A stretch of DNA of 64,000 bases, from positions 13,826,001 to 13,890,000 of the forward strand of contig OZ059898.1 in the NCBI GenBank assembly GCA_964057225.1, in the 5' to 3' direction. The translations under genes and the position numbers were made by a program. Shown here in pieces: positions 20,701-64,000 of this stretch. The DNA is from Auanema rhodensis (lineage: Eukaryota; Animalia; Nematoda). Positions within the stretch are counted from its first letter, which is position 1; each line of letters opens with the position of its first letter. Under the pieces are notes generated by a model. The model was not told the DNA's origin and did not search any database. It worked only from the letters and a program-made list of their open reading frames with translations.

Positions 20701-21346
20701 AGTATGAGATATGCTCAAATGGAACGTGCTTTGGGTGAAATAGATCGTGCTCGTGCCATTTATTCACATTGCTCTGAAATTTGTGATCCAAGAGTAAGAA
20801 TTGTTTTTTTTGGAATGCACTGATGTAATTTTAGGTGCATGGACAATTCTGGGAAACATGGAAAGAATTTGAGGTCAAACACGGAAATGAGGATACTGTA
20901 CGAGATATGCTCCGTATAAAGCGATCTGTACAAGCTACCTATAATACCAATGCTAACTATATGTCCGCCCAAATGATTGCTGCCGGAACTGTACAAGTTG
21001 CCGGGGAAGGAAAGTCTTCCTTGGACTCTATGGCAATGCTTGAAGCTCAGGCAATACAGGTGCAGTTGATTGAGCTTTTCTATTTTACTGTAATACTTTT
21101 TAGGTTGCTGAACAACAACAAAGTGGTGGAAACATCGCATTCATCCGAGGAGCCAGTAAGACAACTCAACAAGATACAACCGAAAATCCGGATGAAATTG
21201 ATATTGATGATGATGCTGATGATGAAGAAGAGGATGAAAAAGGTTTGATATTATAGATTTATTTTGGTTTATTAAACAGTGATTTAGACGTTGATACTCA
21301 ATCGGTACCTTCTGCAGTTTTTGGAGGATTAGCTCCTAAATCTTGA
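17755..21346 (+). CDS. syf-1: Pre-mRNA splicing factor SYF1/XAB2 (HAT repeats)
   Basis: [68 protein letters not shown] and [26 protein letters not shown]; ends [16 protein letters not shown]. Confidence 0.93.
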
Positions 21347-42025: not shown

Positions 42026-45000
42026 TTAATTGGGTTTTTCACAGAAACCACACGTTTTTGCACAATTGTATTCAACAAGCATCTTGTCAGGAAGATTACA
42101 ATAGTTTAGTCGTTTTAAGTCTGCACATCTATAATCAAAGAAAAATTACTTCCTTATCATCTTAAAATTTAAAATAATTACCTGCTGTAAGTGTCAGAAC
42201 AATTAGGAATTGGTTTTCCACATAATCCGCAAGATTCAGCACAATTGAACTTAATTAATGCTGGTGAATAAAATTTCGAAGTACAGAAATTGCTGATTAT
42301 GCTAAGAGATTTGCAATGTACTCTGTAAGAAATATCTTTTTATAGAAAAAAAACTAAAATTTCAAATACTTACGCATCAACAAAGTCTTTGCAGGCTGAA
42401 GTACCAAGACCATTGATAGGGGCACCCTTAGTCGTTATTGTTGGAATGGTTGGACGAGTTGGTGAAAAAGTTGTTCCAGTAATAGGTGGTAGAGTTGGAA
42501 GAGTTCTTGTTGTTTGAACTGTAGAAAAAGGAGTCACTGTGGTTTTTTCTACCGTAGGTGCTGTTCTTGTAGTTATTGTTGGTGTTGTTCTTGTGGTTGC
42601 TGTTGTTGATGGGGTTCGGCCAGTAGGAGGTGTTGCACGAGTACTTGTAGTTGTAGCAGTGAGAGAAACTAAAATTATGAAAAACTGTATTATACAACTG
42701 AAATAAGTTATTAACAGAACCATATCGGTAACCAATCGTAAAGCTAGAAGAATCAAATCTATTATATCCAATAATAGGAGTTGGATTAACTGCACTTGAA
42801 AATACTCGCTTTGTGAATTCAGTGCAACAATATCTATAAAATGTATAAATTATGATGTTAAAGGTATTAAGAAAGCTTCAAACCTTGGATTAACAATTTG
42901 TTGATCAGATTTTACTTTCAATTCGACTCCATTGAAAGCACAACCGAAGTTACATTGTGAGTTTTGCATATCTAATAATTGAAGTTCAACTCTTCCATTT
43001 GTAGGAGCCTATTTATAACAAATTATATGTATATCTTAACTTTTGTATTTTTTTTACTTCAATCCAATATGTTCTAGATGTAAAAATATCTCTAATATTT
43101 CCATCTGATTGTCCCATTGTAATTGTGAAGTTTTGCCAAAATTGAGTAGCCGGTAGAGTAGTTCCACCATCATTTGTCTGAAAAAATATATCTCATAAAT
43201 ATTACTTATTATTTATTATTATTTTCTAACTCTGGTGTTACAGAAATCTCCTCCATATCCGAGAGGACAATTACATCTTCTGCAATCAGCTGGATTCTGT
43301 TCTCCTCCATTATGGCATGTGATTTTTGAAGAGCATCTCGCTTAATATATTTGTATAAAAGTAATTTAAAATAGATTTTATAAATTTAAATTGTTATTTT
43401 GATTGAATACAATTATATATTATAAATTGGTAGAGCTTCTTTCAAAAATACAATACAATTTTATTTTGTAATCGCTGATGAGCTGATCAAAAATAATTTA
43501 AAAATAATTTAATATATATTATTTGATTTCAAAATAAGATAATTTATAAATTATTTAATGACTATTTGTGATATTTATATAATATATTTCATTATAATTT
43601 CAATTATATTACTTATTAATATTTATGTAATGTTTGATATCTAAAATTAGTTTCACATTTTATACATACCTGCGCATTGATAATGTCTATTAAGCAAAGC
43701 AATATCATAGAATGATATTAGACGATTACCCATGGTATAAGCATATTCTACATTATGTGGTATGATTGAAGCTGATGTAAAATCAGTTGAAAATCTATAA
43801 TACCAACATGTACATGTTATTTTTAGAAAAATTGCTTACGCATTTGCAGCATAATGCATAAAGCTGCCATACTCGTATGGTGTATAGTTAATAACTTGAT
43901 CTGAAGATAATTTGGCAAAGTTGTAACGAGTATTTACCTAAAACATAAATCATTAAAATTATTTTCTTAATTATAATTATAAACACAATCGGATTATTGT
44001 AAAATGAAATTGTTAATTAACTACACGTGTTTACAATATAATAATGCAATATGCATCTTATCATAATTTATCACAAAAATCAACGGTTATCTACAGATAT
44101 TTGATTAAATGTTTTTGTTTTTCTCTTATTTTTTCTAGTGAATATATGCAAATACATTTATTCACTTTTTTTTATTCCGTTTGATTTTCATAATTTATAA
44201 AATTCTCACAAATTGTTGATTTTTTGATTGTCATTTTTTAAATTAATGTTTTTGTTTTTGATTAAAAAATTTTTTTTCTAAAAAACTTTAACGTAATTTG
44301 GATTTCTGGTGATGAATTTTCAAAAAATTAAACTTTTTTGAAACTTACTGGAACAGTTGTCAAATCTAATGCTACATATTCATCTCGATCATTTCTTGAT
44401 TGCATATGCCAAACTCCTAGAGCATGAGTGAACTCATGGGCTACTGTTCCAATCTATAAATGACATATTTAAAAAATACAAAGCTATTACTCTGTTTTCA
44501 TTTTCATTTGAATTCTACTTCGTTTTTTTTACATACAGATAAAGATATTAGTCAATCCAATCAACTATTTATATATCATGTTCTTTTTAATTCAATATTC
44601 TTCCTTTTTCTCTATTTTGGCTTTATTTCTCTCTCTTTCTCCCACGCTCTCTCTCTTTCTCTCTCTCTCTCTTTCTCTCTCTCACTCTCTCTCTCTCTCT
44701 CTCTTTCTCTCTTTCTCCCTTTATCGACGTTTCAATTTCTAAGATAACTGAAATTAATATATTTTGAATCTACTTTATGAATTACTATAATCTTATTATA
44801 CTTTCTTCCTATTATGTTATTTACGATTCTAATTGATTAAGCTTATACAACATACCACTTCACAACCGTCACCAATTGAGAGCGTTTGAATACCACCTAT
44901 CATACCGACACTAGAATAGCATCCACCTCCGTTCACGACCTAAATAACTTTATTTTTATTTCAAATAACGTATGTGCTTACATGAATTCTATTGAAGGCA

Positions 45001-48446: not shown

Positions 48447-48616
48447 TCTAACAATATAATGTTATTCATTAAATAAATATTGGAACATGTACTAGAGTCG
48501 AATCTTGCTATAAAGAATATGCCTTTTTAAATGAATTTTTCTATCTAGATCTAATTTCAATCAGTACGAGATCATTGCGTCTATCACTTTAACTGTAAAG
48601 TATATTCCTTCTACAA

Positions 48617-48698
48617 GCAGTCATGTCCGAGTGGTTAAGGAGATTGACTAGAAATCAATTGGGCTCTGCCCGCGTAGGTTCGAATCCTGCTGACTGCG
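48617..48698 (+). tRNA. tRNA-Ser(AGA) copy 1
   Basis: GCAGTCATGTCCGAGTGGTTAAGGAGATTGACTAGAAATCAATTGGGCTCTGCCCGCGTAGGTTCGAATCCTGCTGACTGCG: anticodon arm ATTGA-CTAGAAA-TCAAT, long variable arm, A/B boxes, T-run terminator. Confidence 0.97.
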
Positions 48699-48795
48699 AA
48701 TATTTTGCACTAGAATACACTTTTTTGATCTAATTCCAATCAGTACGAGATCATTGCGTCTATCACTTTAGCTGTAAAGTATATTCCTTCTACAA

Positions 48796-48877
48796 GCAGT
48801 CATGTCCGAGTGGTTAAGGAGATTGACTAGAAATCAATTGGGCTCTGCCCGCGTAGGTTCGAATCCTGCTGACTGCG
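48796..48877 (+). tRNA. tRNA-Ser(AGA) copy 2
   Basis: Identical to copy 1. Confidence 0.97.
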
Positions 48878-48974
48878 AATATTTTGCACTAGAATACACT
48901 TTTTTGATCTAATTCCAATCAGTACGAGATCATTGCGTCTATCACTTTAGCTGTAAAGTATATTCCTTTTACAA

Positions 48975-49056
48975 GCAGTCATGTCCGAGTGGTTAAGGAG
49001 ATTGACTAGAAATCAATTGGGCTCTGCCCGCGTAGGTTCGAATCCTGCTGACTGCG
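48975..49056 (+). tRNA. tRNA-Ser(AGA) copy 3
   Basis: Identical to copy 1. Confidence 0.97.
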
Positions 49057-49153
49057 AATATTTTGCACTAGAATACACTTTTTTGATCTAATTCCAATCA
49101 GTACGAGATCATTGCGTCTATCACTTTAGCTGTAAAGTATATTCCTTCTACAA

Positions 49154-49235
49154 GCAGTCATGTCCGAGTGGTTAAGGAGATTGACTAGAAATCAATTGGG
49201 CTCTGCCCGCGTAGGTTCGAATCCTGCTGACTGCG
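49154..49235 (+). tRNA. tRNA-Ser(AGA) copy 4
   Basis: Identical to copy 1. Confidence 0.97.
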
Positions 49236-49332
49236 AATATTTTGCACTAGAATACACTTTTTTGATCTAATTCCAATAAGTACGAGATCATTGCGTCTAT
49301 CACTTTAGCTGTAAAGTATATTCCTTCTACAA

Positions 49333-49414
49333 GCAGTCATGTCCGAGTGGTTAAGGAGATTGACTAGAAATCAATTGGGCTCTGCCCGCGTAGGTTCGAA
49401 TCCTGCTGACTGCG
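49333..49414 (+). tRNA. tRNA-Ser(AGA) copy 5
   Basis: Identical to copy 1. Confidence 0.97.
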
Positions 49415-49511
49415 AATATTTTGCACTAGAATACACTTTTTTGATCTAATTTCAATCAGTACGAGATCATTGCGTCTATCACTTTAGCTGTAAAGTATAT
49501 TCCTTCTACAA

Positions 49512-49593
49512 GCAGTCATGTCCGAGTGGTTAAGGAGATTGACTAGAAATCAATTGGGCTCTGCCCGCGTAGGTTCGAATCCTGCTGACTGCG
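49512..49593 (+). tRNA. tRNA-Ser(AGA) copy 6
   Basis: Identical to copy 1. Confidence 0.97.
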
Positions 49594-49700
49594 AATATTT
49601 TGCACTAGAATACACTTTTTTGATCCCTTTCGATCTAATTCCAATCAGTACGAGATCATTGCGTCTATCACTTTAGCTGTAAAGTATATTCCTTCTACAA

Positions 49701-49782
49701 GCAGTCATGTCCGAGTGGTTAAGGAGATTGACTAGAAATCAATTGGGCTCTGCCCGCGTAGGTTCGAATCCTGCTGACTGCG
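49701..49782 (+). tRNA. tRNA-Ser(AGA) copy 7
   Basis: Identical to copy 1. Confidence 0.97.
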
Positions 49783-49889
49783 AATATTTTGCACTAGAAT
49801 ACACTTTTTTGATCCCTTTTGATCTAATTCCAATAAGTACGAGATCATTGCGTCTATCACTTTAGCTGTAAAGTATATTCCTTTTACAA

Positions 49890-49971
49890 GCAGTCATGTC
49901 CGAGTGGTTAAGGAGATTGACTAGAAATCAATTGGGCTCTGCCCGCGTAGGTTCGAATCCTGCTGACTGCG
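49890..49971 (+). tRNA. tRNA-Ser(AGA) copy 8
   Basis: Identical to copy 1. Confidence 0.97.
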
Positions 49972-50068
49972 AATATTTTGCACTAGAATACACTTTTTTG
50001 ATCTAATTCCAATCAGTACGAGATCATTGCGTCTATCACTTTAGCTGTAAAGTATATTCCTTCTACAA

Positions 50069-50150
50069 GCAGTCTTGTCCGAGTGGTTAAGGAGATTGAC
50101 TAGAAATCAATTGGGCTCTGCCCGCGTAGGTTCGAATCCTGCTGACTGCG
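50069..50150 (+). tRNA. tRNA-Ser(AGA) copy 9 (acceptor-stem variant)
   Basis: A>T at 50075. Confidence 0.9.
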
Positions 50151-50257
50151 AATATTTTGCACTAGAATACACTTTTTTGATCCCTTTCGATCTAATTCCA
50201 GTCAGTACGAGATCATTGCGTCTATCACTTTAGCCTTAAAGTATATTCCTTCTACAA

Positions 50258-50339
50258 GCAGTCATGTCCGAGTGGTTAAGGAGATTGACTAGAAATCAAT
50301 TGGGCTCTGCCCGCGTAGGTTCGAATCCTGCTGACTGCG
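50258..50339 (+). tRNA. tRNA-Ser(AGA) copy 10
   Basis: Identical to copy 1. Confidence 0.97.
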
Positions 50340-50446
50340 AATATTTTGCACTAGAATACACTTTTTTGATCCCTTTTGATCTAATTCCAATAAGTACGAG
50401 ATCATTGCGTCTATCACTCTAGCTGTAAAGTATATTCCTTCTACAA

Positions 50447-50528
50447 GCAGTCATGTCCGAGTGGTTAAGGAGATTGACTAGAAATCAATTGGGCTCTGCC
50501 CGCGTAGGTTCGAATCCTGCTGACTGCG
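50447..50528 (+). tRNA. tRNA-Ser(AGA) copy 11
   Basis: Identical to copy 1. Confidence 0.97.
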
Positions 50529-50625
50529 AATATTTTGCACTAGAATACACGTTTTTGATCTAATTCCAATAAGTACGAGATCATTGCGTCTATCACTTTA
50601 GCTGTAAAGTATATTCCTTCTACAA

Positions 50626-50707
50626 GCAGTCATGTCCGAGTGGTTAAGGAGATTGACTAGAAATCAATTGGGCTCTGCCCGCGTAGGTTCGAATCCTGCT
50701 TACTGCG
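50626..50707 (+). tRNA. tRNA-Ser(AGA) copy 12 (acceptor-stem variant)
   Basis: G>T at 50701. Confidence 0.9.
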
Positions 50708-50814
50708 AATATTTTGCACTAGAATACACTTTTTTGATCCCTTTTGATCTAATTCCAATAAGTACGAGCTCATTGCGTCTATCACTTTAGCTGTAAAGTA
50801 TATTCCTTCTACAA

Positions 50815-50896
50815 GCAGTCATGTCCGAGTGGTTAAGGAGATTGACTAGAAATCAATTGGGCTCTGCCCGCGTATGTTCGAATCCTGCTGACTGCG
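50815..50896 (+). tRNA. tRNA-Ser(AGA) copy 13 (T-stem variant)
   Basis: G>T at 50875. Confidence 0.88.
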
Positions 50897-51003
50897 AATA
50901 TTTTGCACTAGAATACACTTTTTTGATCCCTTTTGATCTAATTCCAAAAAGTACGAGATCATTGCGTCTATCACTTTAACTGTAAAGTATATTCCTTCTA
51001 CAA

Positions 51004-51085
51004 GCAGTCATGTCCGAGTGGTTGAGGAAATTTTTTAGAAATCAATTGGGCTCTGCCGGCGTAGGTTCGAATCCGGCTGATTGCG
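51004..51085 (+). pseudogene. Degenerate tRNA-Ser copy 14
   Basis: Many substitutions break the anticodon, variable and acceptor stems (gaaattttttagaaatcaatt). Confidence 0.85.
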
Positions 51086-51120
51086 AATATTTTGCATGAG
51101 AAAGCAATTTTTTGATCCCT

Positions 51121-54100
51121 CGTTACATATTGTTTCTTCCCGTCTTTTCATGGTCGGAAGATATATGTACTTCTACCTTGTTCCTTAGGTAGGCAGACCC
51201 GAACGCCCCGATTTCCTTATTAAGACAAATATTTAAAGAGAAAAGGATTCATTATCAGATAACAAGAAAATACAATATAAGAATTACATTAAGAAAGAAT
51301 ACAAAAAGATATAATAGAGTATTAAATAGAAAATATATATAGATGATATAGAGATGAGACTCACATGGCTATAAGACAACCTATCTGGGTCAGGCCAGAA
51401 GCAAGAGTGCCATGTGTGTCCCATGTTGTAGACGGGGCTTGTTCAGGCTCCCGCTATTTGAATAGCGCGCACATGTTTACCATGTGCTTGCAGATGTGAC
51501 ATCCCTCCACCTTAAAAAGTTGAACGTCCTCGTTCAAAAACAAAAATTAATTAATTCACTTTTTAAGATAGTTGGATGTTGGAAAAAAAATCATGGTGTA
51601 GTGGATAAAAAAATGTATACAATACGATTTGAAAGTTTAGCTATTGTCTCTTAAAGTTTGTTGAATTCGAAATGTAGTATCGAGTAGATTCTATTCCATT
51701 CACTTGAGTAGTGAAATGCTTGCAAACGAAGCTTTGCTTCTAAACCATTTGACTGTGATATAGTAGTTCATTTTCTTAAGCTGTACAGGTACGGTGTTAC
51801 TCTGAGAATAGGTCGAGCCCGTTCTGTACAAAAAAATGAAAACTCGTTTGACCCGTATGACTAATGTCCATAAGGTGAATACAAGTAATGATTAAGCATA
51901 ACAAATAGCAAGATTCACAAGAGAATGTTGAAAAAATCTACTCAATGAGAGTTGGAGTAATAAAACAAAACCTTGTAAAATAATAGCAGACTTTTCGGAG
52001 AAAATCAATCAGCAACAAAGAAGTGTTACAATCAGAAATGGCACAAAATAAAAAAAAATTCAACAGTTTGATTTTGTTAAAAAAAACTACCTTCAAGAAA
52101 TTGTGATAACCGGAATAGATTTTGTCCGTTGGTAAGGTTTGACGAAGTCCTTGTGTACTCTTGTGCTTTTTTCTTCATCTGTTTGAACCACGAAGAAAGA
52201 TCTTTGAATTGCTGTAACTAAATAAGGCCCTTCGAATGAAGGTGTCAGTTTGTTTCGTGTAGAATTCACTTTTATCATAACTAAGTCATTAACCTGAATT
52301 TCTTTATTTTGTGTTTTATTTCGTGTATTGTACCGTTGTTCATTCTTCTTTGTGCATGTTTCAATTCTATTTTTTACTATATTAGATGTGCTTTCATTTT
52401 GTATTAGCGATATATTGACAAAATCTTCTGTAGGATTGGCTGGTTCTTCAGTTTGAAGATTATTTCCAGGCAATTGATGGTCAATAGGAAGTCTTGCATC
52501 CCGACCAAATAATACAACATATGGACTAATAAATGTTGATGAGTTTGGTAACGTATTGATCGCGAACATAACTTTGCTATAATAACAACATCAGTTATTT
52601 TGTCGTTTCGAGGCAAAATAATAGATGATTTTGAATAATATTTCGCCTGTTTTGCATGTAATATGCCTTCTCGTTTTTCATACTGGTCTGATATATTAGC
52701 CGGACAGTTATCATTATTAATTTGAGAAAGTGCTTCGCGAATCCAGGGAACTCCAGCTTGAACTTTCCGTATTTCTTCACAATTTAGTTGGTCAATAGAA
52801 GAAATAGTTGTAATATGAGCAATGAAAGCATCAACAGGTTTTACTTTGTCCTTTGGTTTAGTAGGACGACTGTCATTTGCTTCGTTTCCTATATACCTTC
52901 GTTTCCTATATATTTAAAGTTTTAAATGCGTCTGCATGTTCCGATTTCCACTCAAAAGGAGTATCCTTATGTGTTAACTTATACAATGGCTCAGCTATTC
53001 CGGCATAATTTTGATTAAACTGTCGAAAATAGTTAGTCATACCTAGAAAGGATCTGACAGCCGTAACTGTGCCTGGATTTGGAAATTCGGAAACAGCCTG
53101 TATCTTAGCAGGATCTGGTTTAACACCATTTCTACCTATTACAAAACCGAAAAACTTTACTTCAGTGGCTGCAAAGCAACATTTAGATAACTTAATTTTT
53201 AACCCTAGTTCAGTAACCTTTTTCAGCACTTCTTGTATGTCTCTCAAATGTTCTTCAGCTGAGTTCGAGATTATTAACAAATCATCTAGATATACGAACA
53301 GTTTGCATCTAACAAGAGATTGCAAGTATTGTACTGCGGATTGAAAAGTGTGTGGCGCTCCACACAATCCCATAGGCATTCGGCAATACTGATATGTACC
53401 TGATGGAGTGGTAAAAGCAGTTAGGTATTTATCTGAGCGTTTCAACGGTATTTGGAAGAAACCAGAAATGAGATCAAAATTCGAAAAGAACTGAGCTCCA
53501 GCCGCTAAATCTATGATATCAGGAATGTGTGGGATGCTGTATGTTTGTTTCTTAGTAATACTATTCAATGCTGTAAAGTCAGTAACAAACCGGAAAGAAT
53601 TATCTTTCTTTTTCACAAGAACAACCGGTTCAATATCGGATCTTATATAAATGGCATGTTCAACTGGTCCGCAAAAGAGACCAATATTATGATCAAGGTT
53701 GAAAAATGCCGTTTGGTTTTCCTTAATGATTGTGATCAAATTTTTCTTCATTTTATGAGACAGAGTGCAGGAATTGAAGTTCAAATCATCCAAAAGATGC
53801 TGAAGAAAGGTTGGTAACTTATCTTACCAATCAGCTTCAGGTGGAACATAATCGTTCATAATTTCTTTAGATGCTATAAGTCCTGAACCAATGTGGTCAT
53901 TTTTATTAATTTTAATCGGCTTTGAAGAACTGTTTGATACTACCATAGTACTAGGAAAAGGTCCTATGGCGGCATCTGGAATTGAGATAGGACCTGTGCT
54001 ATATTTTAAAAGAGCATATTGATTAAAACCGTAGCTCCAGAATCCCATAATGCTTACAGTCCTCTACCTTCAATGTCAATATGAACAAACGGTAACATGT

Positions 54101-54756
54101 GTCTATCTTTCTTTGTTGTTGTTTGACATACAAAAGGTATGGCTGAAGGAATGTAAGTTATGATGGTGGGAAAATAGCTCCGCATCAATTCATCACTAAC
54201 TGTTTCATGAATCTCATCTCCCTCAAGTGGTGGAGCTGTTGGGCTCAACATGATATGGTTTATTTTTAACATAGAAGTAGGGGAGAGATAACATTTTATA
54301 GTGAAATATAATGCTATCATTAGACATAATATCAGAGTTATACAACCGATGGTAATGAGTGTTCATTGACACAATTGTTAGTTTAGGATTGACAAAAGAT
54401 CACATAACTAACTGGGCAAAGTCTAAAAATTTCAAAAATCCCAATCTTTTGATTTTACAATGTATGGGTATAGAGGAAATTAAACTGGCTACTAGACAGA
54501 TGATTAATAACATGAAATTGTAAGATCTTATCACTCAAGTAGCTCGTCATATAGAAGTTCCTCGGTTAAAAAGATCTTTGATGAAATCTACAACATTCAT
54601 AGAAGATTTCTTTCGAGGAATGGCTCACGCAGTAGTATATCAAGCCACATTTCTTGATGGTACACAAACAGTTCCATCAATGGAACAGTTGGTAAGAGCC
54701 TTATATCCATCTATATTACCACGTAGTGGAAATATGAATCGATCTGAAATTTTTTT
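51121..54756 (-). mobile_element. Ty3/gypsy LTR retrotransposon, 5'-truncated and internally deleted
   Basis: 3' LTR 51121-51501 (minus strand begins TGTCACA) preceded by PPT AAGGTGGAGGGA (51502-51513). Integrase C-terminus with GPY motif (52093-52569). RT 52906-53793. RNase H and integrase core are missing; no 5' LTR seen. Confidence 0.85.
52906..53793 (-). CDS. Ty3/gypsy reverse transcriptase (partial pol)
   Basis: VVLVKKKDNSFRFVTDFTALN, DLISGFFQI, TAFTTPSGTYQYCRMPMGLCGAPHTFQ, YLDD and VRSFLGMTNYFR. Confidence 0.93.
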   Translation of the reverse strand: MDDLNFNSCTLSHKMKKNLITIIKENQTAFFNLDHNIGLFCGPVEHAIYIRSDIEPVVLVKKKDNSFRFVTDFTALNSITKKQTYSIPHIPDIIDLAAGAQFFSNFDLISGFFQIPLKRSDKYLTAFTTPSGTYQYCRMPMGLCGAPHTFQSAVQYLQSLVRCKLFVYLDDLLIISNSAEEHLRDIQEVLKKVTELGLKIKLSKCCFAATEVKFFGFVIGRNGVKPDPAKIQAVSEFPNPGTVTAVRSFLGMTNYFRQFNQNYAGIAEPLYKLTHKDTPFEWKSEHADAFKTLNI

Positions 54757-54844
54757 CAATTTTTTGATCCCTTTTGATCTAATTCCAATAAGTACGAGAC
54801 CATTGCGTCTATCACGTTAACTGTAAAGTATATTCCTTCTACAA

Positions 54845-54926
54845 GCAGTCATGTCCGAGTGGTTAAGGAGATTGACTAGAAATCAATTGGGCTCTGCCCG
54901 CGTAGGTTCGAATCGGGTTGACTGCG
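54845..54926 (+). tRNA. tRNA-Ser(AGA) copy 15, an orphan array unit with an altered T-stem and no T-run terminator
   Basis: Full upstream spacer (54757-54844) plus tRNA; the 3' end reads gaatcgggttgactgcg. Confidence 0.75.
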
Positions 54927-54929
54927 AAT

Positions 54930-57119
54930 GACAACTGGAAGACGCGGTCAATTACGGCGGTTACAAAGCCGAGTACTGTGATAAACACTCAATAGTATTA
55001 CAATCGTTTTAAGGTAGTCCGAGTAAAACGAAACAAGTGAGCTGATTAAGTGAGTGGGTACAAAAAAGCTCGGTATGGTAAACTCGACGTTCAGGAGACT
55101 GAATGTACTGTTTGTAATCTGATGAGTGGACTGTTCAAAACCTATGTATTCGTTCACGTAATACAAGTTGCCTTTGAGATGTAATGTGGCGGAAGTACAC
55201 GGATGAGTACACGTTATAGAGGGTGTTGAAAAATTGCTCTGTATGCGAATAGAGTTGTTGTAACCCTGAGAATTGCATGTAAGCAGAAATTCTTCATCGT
55301 CGCACGAAATTCGAATGTGGGATGATATACTGATGCAAGTAATGATTGTTGTTGCTCTAGTAACACAGTCAAAACATCCAACTAGGTCTTTGGATTTTAG
55401 TTCGCAAATAGTAGGACTATTGTCGTATTCATAAGTGACATCAGAGATATTTGTCCACATTTTAATGTCAACAGCGCTTATGGGATGAGCAAAAATGAGA
55501 TTGTTTTTTGAGATCATGGTCAGAGATGGAAGAGATAATGGCAGGGTGTAGTTATTAGTATAGAACTCGTTAGGATTGTTGTCTTGACAATAGCAAGTTT
55601 CGACTGTTTCGGCTGGTCTGAACATGTTTCTGTTGCAGTACATTCGGAGAATGGGTCAGCGGTTTTAACTTTTCCGCACGAGTATGAAAATGTAGCAGAG
55701 TGAGGTAAAACTTCAATTCTCGAGTTGGAAGTAATGAATCGTCTATGGAGGATTTCATTATCAGAATATGTTATTCCCCCAAGAGTAATATGGTACCCCT
55801 TAATGATTTTTGTAGAGTGTGGTAAAAAGGGGACGTGCGAGATCGTTTCAGTTTTGTTCTCAATAGCTGTATGGATGCTAATCTGGAGAAAAACCCTAGG
55901 TGTCCATCGTGAGCAGTAGAAAACTTCGTGGGTGATATTGTCATTGGGAACATGAAAGTTGCGGTAGAAGAGACAACCAGAAGTTGGTAACGCACAACCG
56001 CATGATAGAAATCCACAGCTTTCTGAACAACAGCTGGTACCTGGATATTGGTTGGCTTATGAGAGTTCTGAGATCGATGTATTGGGTCGAACGTTCGCAC
56101 AAAACGATCCTACACAAGAACCCATATGGGGACTCCGTTTTGCGGATTCAGTTTTTACAATGGTGTGACGTGTAAAAAATAAGGATACTTTCGTGCACAG
56201 TATACGTGTGTACATAAATTTGATGCGCAGATGTGAGTTCGTGAGCGGATTGGCGTATGATCGGTTTGAATGTGAAGTTGTAAAATATACCTCATTATCG
56301 TAAGTATGGAGGGTGGTGGAGCTGCTGATTTGGTTGACTTTGTGTGGAACCGATTTCATCAGAATTTGTACTTTGTGTTCTGTGTTGTCGTGTTCTATCT
56401 GGTGTGATGTTCAAATGTTTTTGTATTCCAGAAAAGAAACTCATCTCTAAGTTTTTTCTGGAGTATTTCATTCTGTTCATGTCATTTTGCAATGTTGTTG
56501 AGTCATGTACTGTAGAGTCAAATGAACTCTGATAGTCATCGAGCTCATCTCGGCGAAGTTGGATAAGTTGAGTATATTCCTCAACTTCGCCTGTGTTCAC
56601 CATGAGATCTCTCTCATCGCAATAGTCCAAAATGCCCTTGATCAGTTTTGCAACTGTGGGCGGATGTTCTTCGCCAATGTCTTTGGTGACAAGTTGGTCG
56701 ATTTCATGAGCTTTCATGGTCTTATGGGCTTGAGGGTGTTTGGCCAACATCCTTTTATAGCTACCTTGGTATAATTCCAACCAAGTTGCTGGGTAGTCCA
56801 CATGGGTGCGTTCCTCGAGCATCACTCGATGTTCGTCTAACTGATCTCGTAGTGATCGGAAGACGTCCCCAACCGGGATGGCTTTATAATATATACGCAT
56901 CAAGCTAGGCTTGTGCGTATGTATGAACTCTTGACATCTGTCGATGTCATCAACCGGGGGGAAGATGAATGCTTGATGGTACGGGAGGATGTCCTCCTTC
57001 ACCGTGTTGAACAACTTCAACGCGTGAGTTATATTTCTTTTTAAACAACTTAACTGTCTTGCTAAGGCAGTCAGGTTACGAGTTTCCTTTTCCGATGGAG
57101 AAGAGGGACTCATAATCAT
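54930..57119 (-). mobile_element. Fragment of an env-bearing LTR retroelement (BEL/Pao-type) with a frameshifted phlebovirus Gc-like glycoprotein and an upstream 274-aa ORF
   Basis: HMGSCVGSFC, CSESCGFLSCGCALPTSGCLFYR (~55960-56035), CYCQD and LVGCFDC match the Phlebovirus G2 cysteine pattern known in nematode Cer/Atlas-type elements. Hydrophobic C-terminus. Confidence 0.8.
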
Positions 57120-57490
57120 TTTGTTTGAAGAGAAATATTATTGTTCAAGTTAATTTTGTGTAGCTCTAGCTAATTTGTTGATTGATTATTAAAATCAACT
57201 GAATTAAAGTCCGAATATAATAGCTGTCGATAGAAGGAATAACAATATAAATATGAGAAAAAAATGTGAAGATAAGAAAAGATGTGCAAGTAATATGGAT
57301 AAGCAAATAATTCACTATGAGAAGGTACAATGAATATTTAGTTGAATATTTGTTAACAGTTTTTTCTTTGGAGAGTTATACTGTTAGTGTTTTCGTGTAG
57401 TTGTTACTGTTTCGCTAAATTACGTGTGTGGAGTCTTTTGTGAAAAAGTGTATGTGTTATCTTTTGAACATATATATATATATACATATA

Positions 57491-58190
57491 CAGTCCTGTG
57501 CGATGAAGGTTGCACACCCACTAGAATCCCTTATACCTTCTCAGACAAACTACAAAAATTCAGAAAAAATATATTTTGGATGTTAAAAAACGATAATGAA
57601 TTCAGAAAAAATCTTTAAAGTTTTAAAAATCATGTTTAAAAGTATTTTCTGAAGTCTCCGAAATTTTCATAAACTGCTTGAAGTCTTTTTTCATGAATTT
57701 CAGAAATTTCATCAAGATTTCAGAAATAATTTTTTGATAGAATGTTAGGAGTACCCTAAACATCAATTTTTCTTTTAAACGGGAGAATTTGGTTGTACGT
57801 CAACCAAGTTCTCTTCATAGATATTCAGTAAGATTCAGATGATGAAGCTTACTTGTTTGAAGCTATGCCATAGGAAAAACTTGGTTATTGATCGAGCTCT
57901 GTGTTTAGAATCATTTTAAAATATTTCTAATGAATTAACTTCTTCCTAATCTCAAATTTTGTTATATTAAGATGAATTATTCAAATTAGTCAAAAAACAC
58001 TATTTTTCTTTATAAATTTAGAAAATAATATTGAAATCAGTTTTTATTATATTAACATTTATTTTTACTGACTATATACTATATAAACTCGCAAAATTTT
58101 TGAAATTAAAAAAAAAATTTTTTTTGTAGTTTGAAGGGGAAATCTGGGGCCTCTAACATAGGGGTGTGCAACCTTCATCGCACAGGACTG
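57491..58190. mobile_element. Non-autonomous Tc1/mariner-type element (MITE), 700 bp
   Basis: Perfect 29-bp TIRs CAGTCCTGTGCGATGAAGGTTGCACACCC (57491-57519; reverse complement at 58162-58190), flanked by TA inside a TA-rich tract; no ORF. Confidence 0.9.
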
Positions 58191-58989
58191 TATATATATG
58201 TATATTTTTTTTTGTTAGTTAAATTAGTATGTTTTTAAATTTTTAACAATTGAGATTGTTCAGGCAAAGATAATTAAATAAGTATCTTTCTCTGGTTAAA
58301 AAAAGAAAAGGTGGATGATTCACTAGATGAGAGAACAATTCAAGTTAAGAGATTACTGTAGGAAATAGAGAGAAAAAATTGAGTTTTTCAAAATCGATCA
58401 AAAAATGTGAGCAAACTAGCTTTGATGAATTCAGTAAGGTTTTCTGAGTAATTTGATACTAAATATGCTGTTGCTTTATTTTTTTTATTTCAAAAAATAT
58501 AATATCAATATTAATTGGTTGAAATATGATATGGATATCCAAAAAGTATTCAAAATAGTATTGTTTGATTGATCAGAAAGTATGTGTATGAAAAGGATGA
58601 GTAATTTGAAACAAAAGATTTATTTCTGAACAGATGAACAAAGGAAATTGTATAAGATAACAGATGTGGATGAAATATAAACTGTCAAATGTGAAATAAT
58701 GAAATTAAAATAAAACAAATTGAATTTATAAAATAACTTACCAACTTAATGTAAATGTATAAAGGATACCAGAGAGTATCAATTCAAATTCAATAAGCGG
58801 TTAAAGTGTTAATGCGAACAAATGAAAACTAACTTGATTCTCTTTGAGGATCCTTGCTGTTGATCGTCCTTGTCTGGTGAATAGGTTAGCAGATGGCGTC
58901 GGGTGTTGTGGCTGGCTGTGGCGACGGAATGAATGACCTGTCTGGCAGCTATTCCGTGTGGGATGTTAAGGGGATGGGCTTGTCTGCAA

Positions 58990-60590
58990 AATGTTTGTGT
59001 GAGATTATTGAATAAGATAATGAAATAGATTTTAAAAAAAATGAGTGGGCTAGCTTCTCATAACTTTCGAAAATGTTTGTGGATCCGTTTTTATTTGATG
59101 ATGACCTAGATAATGTAAAGAAGATGTTTGCGCGGTGCTAATGGCGTTGCATTGGATCAATGACCAGATGGTAACAATCTTTGTCTATATGTCGCCTATC
59201 TTGTCAACAGATTGCCAGAATCGACTTTTTGACACCATTAATGTGTAAATTTTTATTGAACTGTTACTAAATTCATATTTTATGAATTAACATTTGTAGT
59301 ATGTGAAATCGTTGCGATTTTGTGATTTCTCATTATCTCATCTGCGTAGGATGAGATATCATGATGGTTTGTTATTGTTCACAGAAATGTTTCATCTGTG
59401 TAGGTTTTTAACAATATATTTAATGTATTTTGTCCTATAGGACGTGGGTGATGATCTTATATAAGATAAAATATATAAATTTTATGAATTACATGATTTG
59501 GACTCTGACCTTTCTCATTGACCCGTTGGTCGTTACATATGACTCATATTGTTGGAGACAATTGATTTACAAACAATGGATGAACAAAGAAATTCAAAAA
59601 CTATAAGACAAGCCGTAAATAGTAAAAACTCGGAACTCTTTCGCATTTTAATATAAACAACACCAACCGAGAGTGCAAGGGTACCAAACAAACATCAACA
59701 AGTAGGTCAACAGACGTTACTTGTTGATAGGCTCCTTCCACACATGTTCACAAATAATCGTTGATCTCTAGGATACTGACTCCTTTACAGATGAGGAAAC
59801 AGACAGCATTACTCATATAGCAAGGAGGCAACAGGTCTTTTGGTCTAACATGCCTTTTAGTCATCTATTCAATTGATTCACAATTGGTAAAATAACTTTT
59901 GCACTCGAAGTCTATCAAAATTGTTTACAATGAATATTGAAAGTCACCTAAAATATAAAAGATATAAAAAGGTCTCAAAATCAAATAATAAATGAATAAA
60001 TAGCCCTTTTTGACGGTAGCTCTGCTAATTCGTAATTCATATCATTGTTTCTCACTGTCCTCAGTCAGTAGAAATAGGATCGCCATAAAATATGTTTGCT
60101 GGTACTTTGTCGGCATTTTTCTCGTACTCTCGCATATTCTTCTTAGAAAAATATTGTGAAACATAATAAGGGGTGATCAATCCCAGCTGAGTCACTGCCG
60201 GCAAGTTAAAGGAAGTAGCCATTGGGTAATCCAATAGAGTTTATATAGCGAACAACTCACTATGTTTCTTTCTGTAATCATGTGGTACAAAAATATGGTA
60301 ACCAAAATTTTAAATGATGTTTAATTATCACTGGTATCTAGACAATATTTAACAACCAATTATGTCGTACTAACATACGATTCCTTAAAAGTATTTAGAT
60401 CATTGAACTTATACTGTAAAGGACATCCAACGAGTCACTATTAACGAGCAGACTGGCTTGAAGAAAAAAAAAGAAGATATAAAGTAGCGCAATAGAAAGG
60501 TCATAGAGTAGAGAGTGATGCCGATGCACCATTTTGAAGATAAAGGGCTCTTCAAATAGCCTCCCAGGTTCACACTTTCTATTCTATGCC
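58990..60590 (-). mobile_element. Degraded Helitron Rep/helicase remnant
   Basis: Broken minus-strand motifs in Helitron order: GRLF...FKMVHRHHS, YFMAILFLL, QRLFVNM, ADEIM (Walker B-like), GD..RQ.LLP (PIF1 motif III-like). Confidence 0.45.
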
Positions 60591-60920
60591 CTGTTAACAT
60601 AAAAAACTATTATAAGAAGAAAGATTCATTCATATGCCATTCAAATATACATAATACAGAATATAAGGACTAGAAGATATATACTAAGACTAGATAAAGT
60701 ACATAGAAAATGTAATAAGACTACATATACATCACTAATGAGACTAGAGATAGTCTTATTAAAGGACAAGGATAAAACGGTGGTTCACACTAGATGAGTC
60801 ATACGATAAGGACAGCAATGAGGAGAAAAAAGCGACCGTCCGCGACGGTGGTATAAAACAGAGCGCCAGTGAATCTCATCTGCCAACGTGATGAGATTGC
60901 ATCGATTGAATGATGAATAA

Positions 60921-63103
60921 TCAGTGGAAGCACCTTTTTCAGTGGAAGCACCTTTTCTCAAACATAACAACAACACAATATCAGATTCTGTTGATAAAGC
61001 TAACTTACTATCAGAAATGTTTTCTGAACCTTTTTCCACGCCATGCAATAGTCAAAGTTTTCCATGTCCTACAAACAAGTCTGCTGTTACCAGTCCACAA
61101 AAGCATGTCTACATCGAGGAACTTACAGTCTATAAGTTTCTCAGAAACCTTCCTAATCGTGTATGTACGTCACCTGATGGAATCCCCTATTTATTTCTTA
61201 ATAGGTGTGCTCCTTCTCTTGTTCGTCCTATTACATACTTTTTCAATGCCTTTGTGTCGTTTGGTGTTTGTCCTAACGGGTGGAAAACAGCATGGGTTAA
61301 ACCCGTCTATAAATCTGGTAACGTCAGTGATCCTAAAAATTACAGGCCTATCTCTTTAACTGCTTCTATTTCTAAAGTTTTTGAACGCATTATAAGAAAA
61401 GAATTAATAGATTATTTACTTCGTAAAAATCTAATTTGTTCTTCTCAGCATGGTTTTCTTCCTGGTTGTAGCACGTCTACCGCACTTCTGAGTGCTCACT
61501 CTCAATGGAGATGCCTTAAGGAACGCCGCAACACAATTTATACTGCTTTTATTGATTTCTCAAAAGCATTTGATAAAATAAATCATGATATTTTGCTACA
61601 TAAATTACACTCTTTTGGTTTACATAGCTCGCTCATTAAATTTTTCAAACAATTTCTTGCTGGTAGATCATTCTCTGTTGTACAGGGCGATGTTTTATCT
61701 AAACCCCGGGAAATACATTGCGGTGTTCCTCAAGGGACTGTTTTGGGCCCTCTTTTCTTTCTTTTGTATGTTAATGATTTACTGGAAAAATTTACAGGCG
61801 ACACTCAAGCTATTGCTTATGCTGACGATATTAAACTATTTTCGGCAAATGCTCCCAGCCTGCAATGTTCACTTGATTTTCTTTCAGCTTGGTGTAAAAG
61901 CAATGATATGCTCATAAATGTTAAAAAGTCCAAAATCATGGTTATAGGGAAAGTTGAAAGCGCTGTGAGCTTTCAAATCAATGACTGTTTACTTGAATCC
62001 GTCAATAACTTTAAAGATTTGGGAGTTATTATAGACAAAAACCTTTCTTTTGGTTCTCACTTTCAATCAATTACCTCTACCGCTACCAAACGTTGTAAGC
62101 TCATTCTGAGATGCTTCAACAGTTCTTGCCCCAAATTACTCTTCCGTTTGTTTTGTTGCTATGTTAGACCTATATTGGAGTATGCATCTGAGGTTTGGTC
62201 TCCATACCTCAAAAAAGACATTCAATTTATAGAGAGTGTTCAAAAAAGGTTTGTTAACGCTATTTTTAAGCGTGCCAATCTTGAGATTCACGGCTACATG
62301 AATAAGCTCGAGTTCCTCAAGGCAGATGAGCTGATAAACAGACGTGTTATCGCTGATTTTTGCCAATATTTCAGAATAGCAAAGGGTAACTCAATCCTTA
62401 GTAAAACTTTGTTCAGACTAAAAGAGCATCAATATTCATTTCGTCAGCATGATTATCTTTTGGTAGCACCACAGTACTTCTCAAAAGCTGCATTATCAAG
62501 TTTTGAATATCGCTGGATCCAAGATTGGAATGAACTTCATCCCATTTTTGTTAATATTGAGAAAACGTATAATTTTCGTAGCTATCTGAAAAACTGTAAA
62601 TTTCGCAATTGTAAAAATTAATATGTATTGTTGCTATTGTTAACTACATATATATTTCACTATTTTTTTGTTTTTTCGTTTCTGTGAGCTTACTCTACCT
62701 GTTTTCTTGTCTACTTTGTTTACCTGACTCAGTATTTCTCGCGCATCCGACCTATAGACATGAGTCATACGGTCAGAGCGTGGTTATCACTCATTGACAG
62801 AACGGGCTTGACCTTTGTTTTCTTGGTATCACCGCACCTCGTCAACGGTAGAAGTGATAAGCTTTGAATTGTTTCTTATTTCAAAGCTGAGATCATTAAA
62901 AGTCTTCTCACAACAATCGTCAAGAACATACGGTGTTTCAAGTTTCACAAATCGAACATTACGTTAGTGTTCTCTCTTTTTCTTATCTTTTTTCTCAACT
63001 ACCGAAAGGTTAATCTTTTTTTTCACACAACAATATACATTTTTCACTCATTTATTGTAACCTGTGGTATTGTTGAACTGAAATAAATAAATAAATAAAT
63101 AAT
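60921..63103 (+). mobile_element. 5'-truncated CR1/L2-like non-LTR retrotransposon with an (AAAT)n tail
   Basis: Uninterrupted RT ORF, ~480-nt 3' UTR and a gaaataaataaataaataaataat tail at 63080-63103. No endonuclease domain present. Confidence 0.9.
60924..62621 (+). CDS. Non-LTR (CR1-type) reverse transcriptase, partial ORF2
   Basis: SPDGI, NYRPISLT, QHGF, IDFSKAFD, GVPQGTVLGP, YADD, KDLGV and YVRPILEYASEVWSP. Confidence 0.95.
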   Translation: MEAPFSVEAPFLKHNNNTISDSVDKANLLSEMFSEPFSTPCNSQSFPCPTNKSAVTSPQKHVYIEELTVYKFLRNLPNRVCTSPDGIPYLFLNRCAPSLVRPITYFFNAFVSFGVCPNGWKTAWVKPVYKSGNVSDPKNYRPISLTASISKVFERIIRKELIDYLLRKNLICSSQHGFLPGCSTSTALLSAHSQWRCLKERRNTIYTAFIDFSKAFDKINHDILLHKLHSFGLHSSLIKFFKQFLAGRSFSVVQGDVLSKPREIHCGVPQGTVLGPLFFLLYVNDLLEKFTGDTQAIAYADDIKLFSANAPSLQCSLDFLSAWCKSNDMLINVKKSKIMVIGKVESAVSFQINDCLLESVNNFKDLGVIIDKNLSFGSHFQSITSTATKRCKLILRCFNSSCPKLLFRLFCCYVRPILEYASEVWSPYLKKDIQFIESVQKRFVNAIFKRANLEIHGYMNKLEFLKADELINRRVIADFCQYFRIAKGNSILSKTLFRLKEHQYSFRQHDYLLVAPQYFSKAALSSFEYRWIQDWNELHPIFVNIEKTYNFRSYLKNCKFRNCKN

Positions 63104-63116
63104 CGCGTTCGCGATA

Positions 63117-63181
63117 GTTAAGGAGATTGACTAGAAATCAATTGGGCTCTGCCCGCGTAGGTTCGAATCCCGCTGACTGCG
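63117..63181 (+). pseudogene. 5'-truncated tRNA-Ser copy 16
   Basis: Starts in the D-loop (gttaaggagattgactaga...) right after the LINE tail. Confidence 0.85.
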
Positions 63182-63288
63182 AATATTTTGCACTAGAATA
63201 CACTTTTTTTATCCCTTTTGATCTAATTCCAATCAGTACGAGATCATTGCGTCTATCACTTTAACTGTAAAGTATATTCCTTCGATAA

Positions 63289-63370
63289 GCAGTCATGTCC
63301 GAGTGGTTAAGGAGATTGACTAGAAATCAATTGGGCTCTGCCCGCGTAGGTTCGAATCCTGCTGACTGCG
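63289..63370 (+). tRNA. tRNA-Ser(AGA) copy 17
   Basis: Identical tRNA body with a full array spacer. Confidence 0.95.
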
Positions 63371-63477
63371 AATATTTTGGACTAGAAAACAATTTTTCGA
63401 TCCCTTTTGATCTAATTTTCATAAGTACGAGATCATTCCGTCTATCACTTTAGCTGTAAAGTATATTCCTTCTACAA

Positions 63478-63534
63478 GCAGTCATGTCCGAGTGGTTGAG
63501 GAGATTGACTAGAAATCAATCTGGCTCTGCCCGC
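63478..63534 (+). pseudogene. 3'-truncated tRNA-Ser copy 18
   Basis: Breaks after the variable arm (ctctgcccgc) into unrelated sequence. Confidence 0.85.
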
Positions 63535-63725
63535 CGTTAAATTCGGACTCCCCATGTATATGCGTGGACGAAGGATTACACGTCTATAAATTTTTGCAAA
63601 GATGAGCTGGGAATGTGTCCGCTATTGTTGATTATAACAACTATTTGAGGGAAGTTCGCGCGTTCATATTATTAAAAAACCCCATTAAAATAGGTGGACC
63701 TGGTAAAACAGCAGAGAAATAAAAA
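63535..63725 (+). mobile_element. Merlin/IS1016 (ISXO2-like) transposase fragment
   Basis: Translates IVDYNNYLREV...NPIKIGGPGKTAEI, matching the Merlin VDWxxxxREV...IGGPGxxVEIDE pattern; truncated before the catalytic D. Confidence 0.6.
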
Positions 63726-64000
63726 AAACCTATTTGATACCATTTTTGAAGATATTTTATTTTTTATGCGAGAGAGAGAGAATGAAGCTGATTTATAGGT
63801 TAAAAATTTTCATTAAAGTTACTTCTCCCCCCTGGGGGAATACCCCCCAGACCCCCGGAGTCTGGAAGTTGTGCGTGAGGGTGGTTTAGAGTCTATAGGG
63901 TGATTTAGAGTCTATTCTGTCCCCAGGTTGTAAAACTGCGCGCGTTTCGGCAGAAGGGGCGGAGCCTAGCGAGGGGGGGATAACAGAGAAGAGCCTAGGG

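Follow-up and report, generated by a model that had tools for sequence, protein, structure and literature searches.

Introduction

Mobile elements that live in multicopy RNA genes are known from several lineages. R2/R1 elements reside in rDNA and NeSL-1 in spliced-leader arrays. Such site-specific elements (Dada, R2, NeSL, Utopia) use one nucleotide site and a dedicated endonuclease or transposase; most site-specific LINE lineages employ a restriction-like endonuclease. To our knowledge, no tRNA-targeted LTR retroelement has been described in animals. Nested transposon islands ('graveyards') are known in tolerant genome regions.

Retrotransposons targeting tRNA genes are represented by yeast Ty3 and by DGLT-A, Skipper-2, TRE5, and TRE3 of Dictyostelium (PMC5006619, PMC5911963). 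Ty3 and DGLT-A insert 1–4 bp from the site where Pol III initiates, which places them about 15 bp ahead of the mature tRNA 5' end, and Skipper-2/TRE3-type insertions lie about 7–133 bp downstream of tRNA genes (PMC5006619). In zebrafish, Dada DNA transposons occur inside tRNA/snRNA genes and the Dewa LINE in the tRNA-Leu spacer; one-ended junctions were also described for Dada, and arrays of redundant RNA genes were called a 'relatively harmless' home (PMC3706591). Phlebovirus-like Gn-Gc envelope proteins are found in Atlas virus and related nematode Belpaoviridae (PMC9094657; bioRxiv 10.64898/2026.03.22.711591).

We analyzed a 64,000-nt stretch of the Auanema rhodensis genome (the window), in which a tRNA-Ser(AGA) array is interrupted by transposon sequences. 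As with Ty3 and the Dictyostelium elements, the retroelements adjoin Pol III genes, and, as with Dada and Dewa, mobile elements sit in a tandem array of redundant RNA genes. The locus also resembles nested transposon islands in holding unrelated truncated or nested elements of different ages without a common target site. Unlike in those islands, the substrate is a live tRNA gene array rather than heterochromatin or an earlier transposon. The preliminary description of a tRNA array split by several transposon classes was partly confirmed: four element classes were verified, namely Ty3/gypsy, a Bel/Pao envelope, a LINE, and a MITE.

Results

ARAGORN called 15 tRNA-Ser(AGA) genes. A blastn search with one unit as the query recovered all 18 copies claimed previously, arranged as 14 contiguous units, one isolated unit, and three more.

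48548–51120, plus strand: array core, copies 1–14, units of 179 or 189 nt (ARAGORN, blastn, Rfam)
54757–54929, plus strand: isolated unit 15, tRNA at 54845–54926 (ARAGORN)
63117–63534, plus strand: distal array remnant, copies 16–18 (ARAGORN, blastn)

Copies 1–13 are intact, with a mutual identity of about 98–100%. Copy 14 (51004–51085) is a pseudogene carrying a T6 run in the anticodon stem; its identity is 90% by one measure and 92.6% versus core copies 1–13, and its Rfam score is 30.7 bits. Copy 15 has a weakened T-stem, has lost its terminator, and scores 38.2 bits as against 57.8 for the intact copies. The distal remnant consists of one full and intact unit, copy 17 (63289–63370), between two partial ones: copy 16 (63117–63181, tRNA positions 18–82) lacks the A box, and copy 18 (63478–63534, tRNA positions 1–57) lacks the B box. 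Copies 14, 16, and 18 are counted as dead. All three distal copies are of the 189-nt unit type, and substitutions private to the distal units were seen. The units flanking the inserts are 3–7% diverged, compared with about 2% inside the core.

The array has five abrupt edges (51120/51121, 54756/54757, 54929/54930, 63116/63117, and 63534/63535), all of them sharp and at or near the positions first reported. Past each of the five, similarity to the expected array continuation did not exceed the level of shuffled sequence. The junctions fall at four unrelated unit positions: 35 nt past the tRNA, 3 nt past the tRNA, tRNA 17/18, and tRNA 57/58. The last two, which differ from each other and involve different adjoining sequences, show no common nucleotide site. 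Two of the five junction ends lie inside tRNA sequence, which makes up 43–46% of a unit. With a period of 179/189 nt, any point is at most about 55 nt from the nearest tRNA gene, and a tRNA gene on a given side is at most about 107 nt away. Only the first insert leaves the array continuous across its target.

51105–51120, no strand: left copy of a 16-nt duplication, CAATTTTTTGATCCCT, in the array spacer 20–35 nt past tRNA copy 14
51121–54756, minus strand: insert A, 5'-truncated Ty3/gypsy-type retroelement of 3636 bp without a 5' LTR (RVT_1, relatives)
51121–51501, minus strand: putative 3' LTR of insert A, 381 bp (sequence read directly; one copy)
51514–54756, minus strand: broken pol remnant of insert A (Pfam, relatives)
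54757–54772: right copy of the 16-nt duplication, the first 16 nt of unit 15

The reverse transcriptase (RT) domain of insert A was found at 53137–53616 on the minus strand (RVT_1, E = 9e-35). Its closest relatives, 66–73% identical, are Auanema sp. JU1783 proteins with RT_RNaseH_2. The relatives carry both RT_RNaseH_2 and RT_RNaseH, and the similarity runs beyond the RT (outer bounds 52207–53949). The pol remnant contains at least one in-frame stop, and Pfam recognized no protease, RNase H, or integrase domain in it. Judged by protein similarity, insert A has the RT-then-RNase H order of Ty3/gypsy elements (Metaviridae), the RNase H part being assigned via the relatives. The putative LTR starts with TG directly after a purine-rich tract (51502–51513), and its two ends match at 6 of 8 positions as a terminal inverted repeat. 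These three features suggest that 51121–51501, a single-copy segment, is an LTR; self-blast showed no second copy anywhere in the window. Of the earlier claim that a gypsy LTR abuts copy 14, the junction at 51120/51121 and the gypsy-type RT stand, whereas the LTR is deduced from one copy.

Insert A is surrounded by a perfect 16-nt direct repeat of array sequence, a feature absent from the preliminary description. Aligned with a reference unit, the left flank reaches 50931 and the right flank starts at 50916, giving an in-register overlap of 16 nt. The insert is separated by 35 nt from the end of copy 14 and by 88 nt from the start of copy 15. Integrase-made target duplications measure 4–6 bp and flank two LTRs; a 16-nt duplication is thus no integrase product. 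Insert A may have entered by a non-canonical route, in which one LTR end was joined and the other end repaired, or it may have been trimmed later.

54930–57137, minus strand: insert B, envelope-only Bel/Pao-type retrovirus-like remnant (Phlebovirus_G2, relatives)
54948–57119, minus strand: broken envelope gene of insert B (Gc fusion domain similarity, outer bounds 54972–56395)

Phlebovirus_G2 was matched in two reading frames on the minus strand of insert B (E = 7e-33 and 4e-14), and the envelope gene is interrupted by one or more frameshifts and one or more in-frame stops. Its closest relatives are 36–38% identical. Bel/Pao gag, protease, integrase, or DUF5641 was located upstream of Phlebovirus_G2 in 10 of the 12 relatives scanned. 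The envelope is accordingly assigned, by similarity, to a probable Bel/Pao type, the link to Bel/Pao domains being seen in the relatives only. A gypsy identity was rejected for this fragment, its relatives being of the Bel/Pao type. The match to Phlebovirus_G2 is shared with Atlas virus and related Belpaoviridae; unlike in these, only a broken envelope gene is left. No pol or LTR belonging to insert B was found within the window, and both of its ends are therefore unnatural, neither being an element terminus. The fragment does begin 3 nt after copy 15 (54929/54930), as proposed, and in an insert with neither LTR nor pol this junction points to deletion or rearrangement rather than integration.

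60924–63102, plus strand: 5'-truncated LINE of the apurinic-endonuclease type (RVT_1, relatives, tail)
63103–63116, no strand: 14-nt filler between the LINE tail and copy 16, most of a perfect 14-nt palindrome, ATCGCGTTCGCGAT, at 63102–63115

The LINE has an open RT frame of 565 codons (60924–62621; RT domain 61332–62030; RVT_1, E = 4e-39). Downstream of it come a 3' UTR and, at 63081–63102, an (AAAT)n tail. The endonuclease part is missing, the copy beginning at about residue 300–340 of its relatives, which carry Exo_endo_phos_2, that is, the apurinic type. The LINE-type RT and the simple-repeat tail place this copy among the LINEs, its N-terminal endonuclease being absent only through truncation. 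No target duplication was found at the LINE, and the filler showed no similarity to the expected 5' part of the tRNA. The LINE tail had been described as abutting copy 16; the array edge is indeed at 63116/63117 (tRNA 17/18), but the 14-nt filler intervenes. tRNA genes were absent from the flanks of five loci around distant LINE relatives, which is weak evidence (36–37% identity where BLASTP coverage was high; for a C. brenneri protein, 33% across 68% of the query).

57138–57475, no strand: stretch between insert B and the MITE, no element class assigned
57476–58205, no strand: noncoding MITE of 730 bp with 44-nt terminal inverted repeats
58206–60923, no strand: AT-rich sequence, formerly "Helitron", without a recognizable coding remnant or Helitron end
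63535–64000, no strand: former "Merlin fragment", extending to the window end, no element class assigned

The inverted ends of the MITE (57476–57519 and 58162–58205) are 95% complementary, and the core ends, CAGTCCTG..., begin at 57491 and 58190. MITEs are small, noncoding, multicopy elements with terminal inverted repeats; the assignment, made here on one copy, is supported by the inverted ends, the small size, and the lack of coding sequence, and the TA-rich flanks make the target duplication ambiguous. Located between the envelope remnant and the LINE, the MITE is surrounded by non-array sequence, and it is therefore a nested insertion, not an insertion into the array.

Helitrons are recognizable by a 5' TC, by a 3' hairpin with CTRR after it, or by remnants of a Rep/helicase. 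No coding match was obtained in 58206–60900, and a crude scan of 57100–63120, which a degenerate copy could escape, gave no GC-rich hairpin followed by CTRR-T. The nested pair suggested before is reduced to the MITE. The marks of Merlin/IS1595 are an IS1595-type DDE transposase, inverted ends, and an 8–9 bp duplication. Copy 18 is cut at 63534/63535 (tRNA 57/58), as stated for a Merlin fragment, but comparison of the open pieces in 63537–63722 with Pfam and NCBIfam gave no hit even at E ≤ 10, and no transposase match supports the name. A short G-G-P-G-K stretch may recall Merlin/IS1595-type transposases.

A crude survey of the other 48.5 kb of the window, made without a repeat library, yielded neither coding similarity to these transposon families nor a convincing repeat structure. 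At least one conserved host gene lies there, represented by a Syf1 exon.

Discussion

The clustering is probably the result of passive accumulation and decay of unrelated insertions in a redundant, functional tRNA-Ser(AGA) array. The starting state would have been a homogenized tandem array of Pol III-transcribed genes. A few unrelated elements would have inserted independently in its distal part, at least three of them within the array sequence itself. The inserted elements would then have decayed, been partly deleted, and been hit by further elements. Losing a few units would be cheap, with thirteen copies remaining upstream, and interrupted units would drop out of the unequal exchange by which the core is kept homogeneous. 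The insertions would persist because the array is redundant, and tolerance, not aiming, would lie behind the clustering. All coding remnants are broken or truncated and the flanking units are more diverged than the core, which indicates that the events are old. That none was detected in the neighboring 48.5 kb is consistent with insertions being retained only at places where they are nearly harmless. The 'safe haven' proposed earlier agrees with these data, if it means that insertions are tolerated in a redundant array. Several observations run counter to passive accumulation: the cluster is a strong one, with three or more independent hits within about 3.3 kb of array and none detected over the adjoining 48.5 kb; the LTR terminus of insert A falls in the downstream range of Skipper-2; and both LTR-type fragments are antisense to the tRNAs.

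Aimed integration would explain the clustering too. Here, at least one family, most likely the Ty3/gypsy-like element or the LINE, would aim at Pol III genes through an integrase or endonuclease anchored to the Pol III transcription machinery, as is the case for Ty3, DGLT-A, Skipper-2, and TRE; the array would be a true landing pad, and later decay would have blurred the original junctions. In insert A, the LTR-like terminus is located 35 nt downstream of copy 14, immediately after the T-run and within the range of Skipper-2 (PMC5006619), but every spacer position here would qualify. Nor does insert A keep the fixed short upstream distance of Ty3 and DGLT-A, lying at +35 relative to copy 14 and 88 nt upstream of copy 15, or their 4–6 bp duplication and two LTRs, having 16 nt and one LTR-like end. 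Whereas the Ty3 and Dictyostelium families show a fixed offset over many copies, most of them associated with Pol III genes in the Ty3/DGLT-A type, and normal short duplications, this locus offers one copy each at differing offsets. The natural 3' end of the LINE stands next to a tRNA fragment, and zebrafish harbors transposons that are specific for such arrays (Dada and Dewa; PMC3706591). However, Dada and Dewa cut one defined sequence, and the present locus shows no recurrent site; neither a Dada-like nor a restriction-like endonuclease was detected, nor a transposase match past 63535. The LINE relatives have the apurinic-type endonuclease, unlike most site-specific lineages, and the distant ones do not adjoin tRNA genes. 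No two junctions share a position, the duplication at insert A is not of integrase origin, and the envelope junction is no element terminus. In a 179/189-nt repeat, moreover, every site is automatically near a tRNA gene, and nearness therefore carries no information on targeting. Aiming by any of these families is thus unlikely. The anatomy, including the absence of a LINE target duplication and the position of the MITE outside the array, lends no support to the tRNA-targeted transposon system suggested at first, and it is quite improbable that a Ty3/gypsy-like element evolved Pol III-directed integration in this rhabditid nematode and lands preferentially in the tRNA-Ser array.

The locus was also suggested to be a transposon trap, in which Pol III or read-through transcripts of tRNA units feed small-RNA silencing with antisense RNA. 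piRNA clusters, which densely produce small RNAs antisense to the trapped elements, likewise gather fragments of several transposon families, as are gathered here. Copy 15 has no terminator of its own, and a transcript from it would meet the next T4 run after about 81 nt of antisense envelope-remnant sequence. However, copy 15, with its weakened T-stem (38.2 bits), is the one unit that can read into an element, for about 80 nt, and copies 14, 16, and 18 are dead, lacking an intact promoter or holding the internal T6 run. With so little structural basis, a trap of this kind is highly improbable.

About as improbable is that some junctions are assembly artefacts, i.e., collapsed or chimeric repeats joined via near-identical tRNA units: arrays of units 93–100% identical are hard to assemble and two array blocks begin or end inside units, but the private substitutions of the distal units, their uniform 189-nt type, and the perfect register of the duplication around insert A speak for a single genuine array of some age rather than for a chimera.

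If one family did aim, animals would join yeasts and amoebae as hosts of tRNA targeting; the present data do not show such aiming. The 5'-truncated LTR-element fragment with its 16-nt duplication points to an insertion route other than integrase, and the envelope-only remnant of an Atlas-like nematode element may be of specialist interest. If the accumulation was passive, the locus would be a clear example of the redundancy of an RNA-gene array sheltering insertions, and it would show insertions cutting units off from homogenization, the neighbors being 3–7% diverged and partly dead.

Organization of the tRNA-Ser(AGA) Array

A blastn search with one unit returned 18 copies of tRNA-Ser(AGA) in the window, the number of array units given in the preliminary description. 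Rfam recognized 16 genes, and ARAGORN called 15, which are all on the plus strand. The array and the elements lying within it are listed below.

Features of the tRNA-Ser(AGA) array and its inserts
48548–51120, plus strand: contiguous array core of 14 units, in 179- and 189-nt forms
51004–51085, plus strand: tRNA copy 14, adjoining the LTR-like end of insert A; missed by ARAGORN
51121–54756, minus strand: insert A, a Ty3/gypsy-type fragment, 5′-truncated
54845–54926, plus strand: tRNA copy 15, with a weakened T-stem (38.2 bits versus 57.8, Rfam)
54930–57137, minus strand: insert B, with a Bel/Pao-type envelope gene
54948–57119, minus strand: envelope gene of insert B, disrupted by one or more frameshifts and one or more in-frame stops
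57476–58205, no strand assigned: MITE of 730 bp with 44-nt inverted ends, in non-array sequence
60924–63102, plus strand: LINE with an open 565-codon frame containing an RT domain, ending in (AAAT)n
Copy 16, plus strand: tRNA positions 18–82 only
Copy 17, plus strand: intact
Copy 18, plus strand: tRNA positions 1–57 only

The two unit forms differ by a 10-nt stretch (GATCCCTTTT) in the spacer and often alternate toward the distal end, resulting in a 368-nt higher-order period. Every unit beyond copy 12 (units 13–18) is of the 189-nt form; the distal units share this type and are therefore members of one original array. Copies 1–13 are ~98% identical when spacer and tRNA are compared, and each carries a T4 run 5–8 nt past the tRNA. 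Copies 1–10 are identical, and copies 11–13 reach 99%, when the comparison is restricted to the 3′ half of the tRNA and 32 nt of spacer. Copy 14 has diverged furthest of all units (90% identical; 92.6% to the array core), and its eight substitutions include an anticodon-stem T6 run. This run would stop Pol III, and copy 14 is probably dead.

On its left side (48547/48548), the array borders unique sequence. Residual array similarity past each of the five array/insert junctions (51120/51121, 54756/54757, 54929/54930, 63116/63117, and 63534/63535) did not exceed that of shuffled controls, which rules out a degenerate continuation of the array. A 25-nt array-spacer word had no match in metagenome contigs. 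A (TC)n microsatellite of ~90 nt (44628–44717) was seen 4 kb upstream of the array.

The array sequence received at least three independent events: insert A, the block at 54930–63116 (insert B, the MITE, the LINE, and intervening non-array sequence), and whatever begins at 63535. These events fall in ~3.3 kb of array, as compared with none detected in the adjacent 48.5 kb. The clustering is not random, and it could be produced either by aiming or by survival.

Insert A and the 16-nt Duplication

The RT domain of insert A is uninterrupted (RVT_1, E = 9e-35). Its closest matches were Auanema sp. JU1783 proteins (66–73% identity), and the relatives of insert A have a Ty3/gypsy architecture (RVT_1, RT_RNaseH_2, and RT_RNaseH). 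The similarity to these relatives has its outer bounds at 52207–53949. The pol remnant contains at least one in-frame stop, and Pfam recognized no protease, RNase H, or integrase in it. The 381-bp 3′ end is LTR-like: it follows a purine-rich tract, starts with TG, and carries a 6-of-8 terminal inverted repeat whose end is precisely 51121. Since no second LTR of insert A was found anywhere in the window, we infer the identity of this putative LTR from its ends.

The array is continuous across insert A with a 16-nt overlap, as perfect direct copies of CAATTTTTTGATCCCT stand at 51105–51120 and 54757–54772. We read this repeat as a true target duplication. An integrase would leave a duplication much shorter than 16 nt, which suggests one-ended integration or break capture. 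Insert A may have entered through the joining of a single LTR end, followed by repair of the broken end, or a cDNA fragment may have been captured at a break. In a minority view, the repeat arose by chance when a later deletion happened to end in register. By position, such an outcome is estimated at ~8%, and the value falls below this because the 16-mer is private to one unit: among the five distal spacers, it was found only at its two positions flanking insert A.

Insert B and a Possible Read-Through of Copy 15

Matches to the Gc fusion domain of phleboviruses were obtained for two pieces of insert B that lie in different frames (E = 7e-33 and 4e-14). Among 1.8 billion representative proteins searched, 339 were relatives, sharing as much as 38% identity across the greater part of the piece. 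In 10 of the 12 relatives scanned, Bel/Pao domains (DUF1759, DUF1758, Peptidase_A17, Integrase_H2C2, or DUF5641) lie upstream of the Gc domain. Judged from these domains, insert B is a putative envelope gene of an Atlas/Cer-like element (PMC9094657), and not that of a gypsy element or of a free RNA virus.

Six of the eight best relatives have Bel/Pao domains, which ruled out insert B as a non-retroviral insertion derived from a phlebovirus-like RNA virus. Inserts A and B cannot be one element split by a tRNA unit: env would then precede pol, and the two inserts come from different superfamilies. The 88 nt of genomic spacer preceding the tRNA of unit 15 also led us to reject this unit as a copied tRNA primer or an extended primer-binding site.

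Elsewhere in the window, there was no further match to the insert B relatives; pol is missing upstream, as is an LTR downstream. Hence, the junction at 3 nt beyond copy 15 is no element terminus, and it is uninformative on the integration site. The position first described for the envelope fragment was correct.

Insert B has deprived copy 15 of its T-run terminator, and the next T4 run is at 55007–55010. Any copy 15 transcript would have an 81–84-nt trailer, in antisense to the envelope remnant at its 3′ end. A small-RNA trap, as proposed earlier, has little structural basis: copy 15 is the sole unit able to read into an element, over just ~81 nt.

LINE and Remaining Sequence

The named relatives of the LINE come from Caenorhabditis and, with the Auanema matches of insert A, make a rhabditid host likely. 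The relatives have an N-terminal apurinic-type endonuclease. The window copy begins at about residue 300–340 of these relatives, and is therefore 5′-truncated. At the truncated end of the reading frame, there is an exact 18-nt tandem duplication (60921–60956). No target duplication is visible around the LINE, and an exact look-up of its reading frame in public assemblies gave no record. The (AAAT)n tail is followed by 14 nt, holding most of a perfect 14-nt palindrome (ATCGCGTTCGCGAT, 63102–63115), and then by tRNA position 18 of copy 16. The palindrome may be filler or a piece of the LINE 3′ end. The tail had been reported to abut copy 16, but these 14 nucleotides intervene.

No tRNA genes were found around five loci of distant LINE relatives, which speaks weakly against aiming. 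A Caenorhabditis brenneri locus of a LINE relative (L003) is another transposon-rich spot, with a gypsy-type pol gene and a chromo-domain gene at 232–2598 and 11539–14341. From ~6.5 kb upstream of its LINE gene to 10 kb downstream, this locus contains no tRNA gene.

Two further element calls were not upheld by the scans, in which all open pieces of at least 45 codons at 58206–60923 and past 63535 were compared with Pfam. For the supposed Helitron, the 3′-end scan detected no hairpin followed by CTRR-T, and 58206–60923 had no Pfam match; this stretch and 57138–57475 are unassigned. For the supposed Merlin fragment past copy 18, Pfam gave no match beyond 63535, NCBIfam was also blank on this piece, and no recognizable features were seen in 63535–64000. 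The stretch at 63820–64000 is G+C-rich with C and G runs, unlike its AT-rich surroundings, and continues off the window; it includes a 19-nt tandem repeat (63878–63915).

The rest of the window showed no match to the transposon families found at the array. It contains at least one conserved host gene, represented by a Syf1 exon (C-terminal HAT repeats; 20835–21248, plus strand). This is the only tool-supported one of four exon-like open pieces, the others being on the minus strand. We take 3442–3864 to resemble an M3 peptidase and 10965–11468 a condensin subunit; 14136–14648 had no Pfam match.

Aiming versus Survival

The junction anatomy favors survival over aiming. The unit positions of the junctions all differ, and two of the five junction ends fall inside tRNA sequence, which makes up 43–46% of a unit. 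One junction is no element terminus, and the duplication of one insertion is not integrase-made. At least the MITE is nested in sequence other than the array, and all inserts are old and broken. With a period of 179/189 nt, closeness to a tRNA is automatic. Known targeted families insert at fixed offsets (PMC5006619), and elements known to be array-specific have a single defined site (PMC3706591), whereas neither a fixed offset nor such a site is found here. The array had been described as a landing pad for several transposon classes. The underlying observation is real and mostly accurate, but a landing pad beyond passive shelter in a redundant array is unsupported. Loci of this kind are known, and this one adds a new example.
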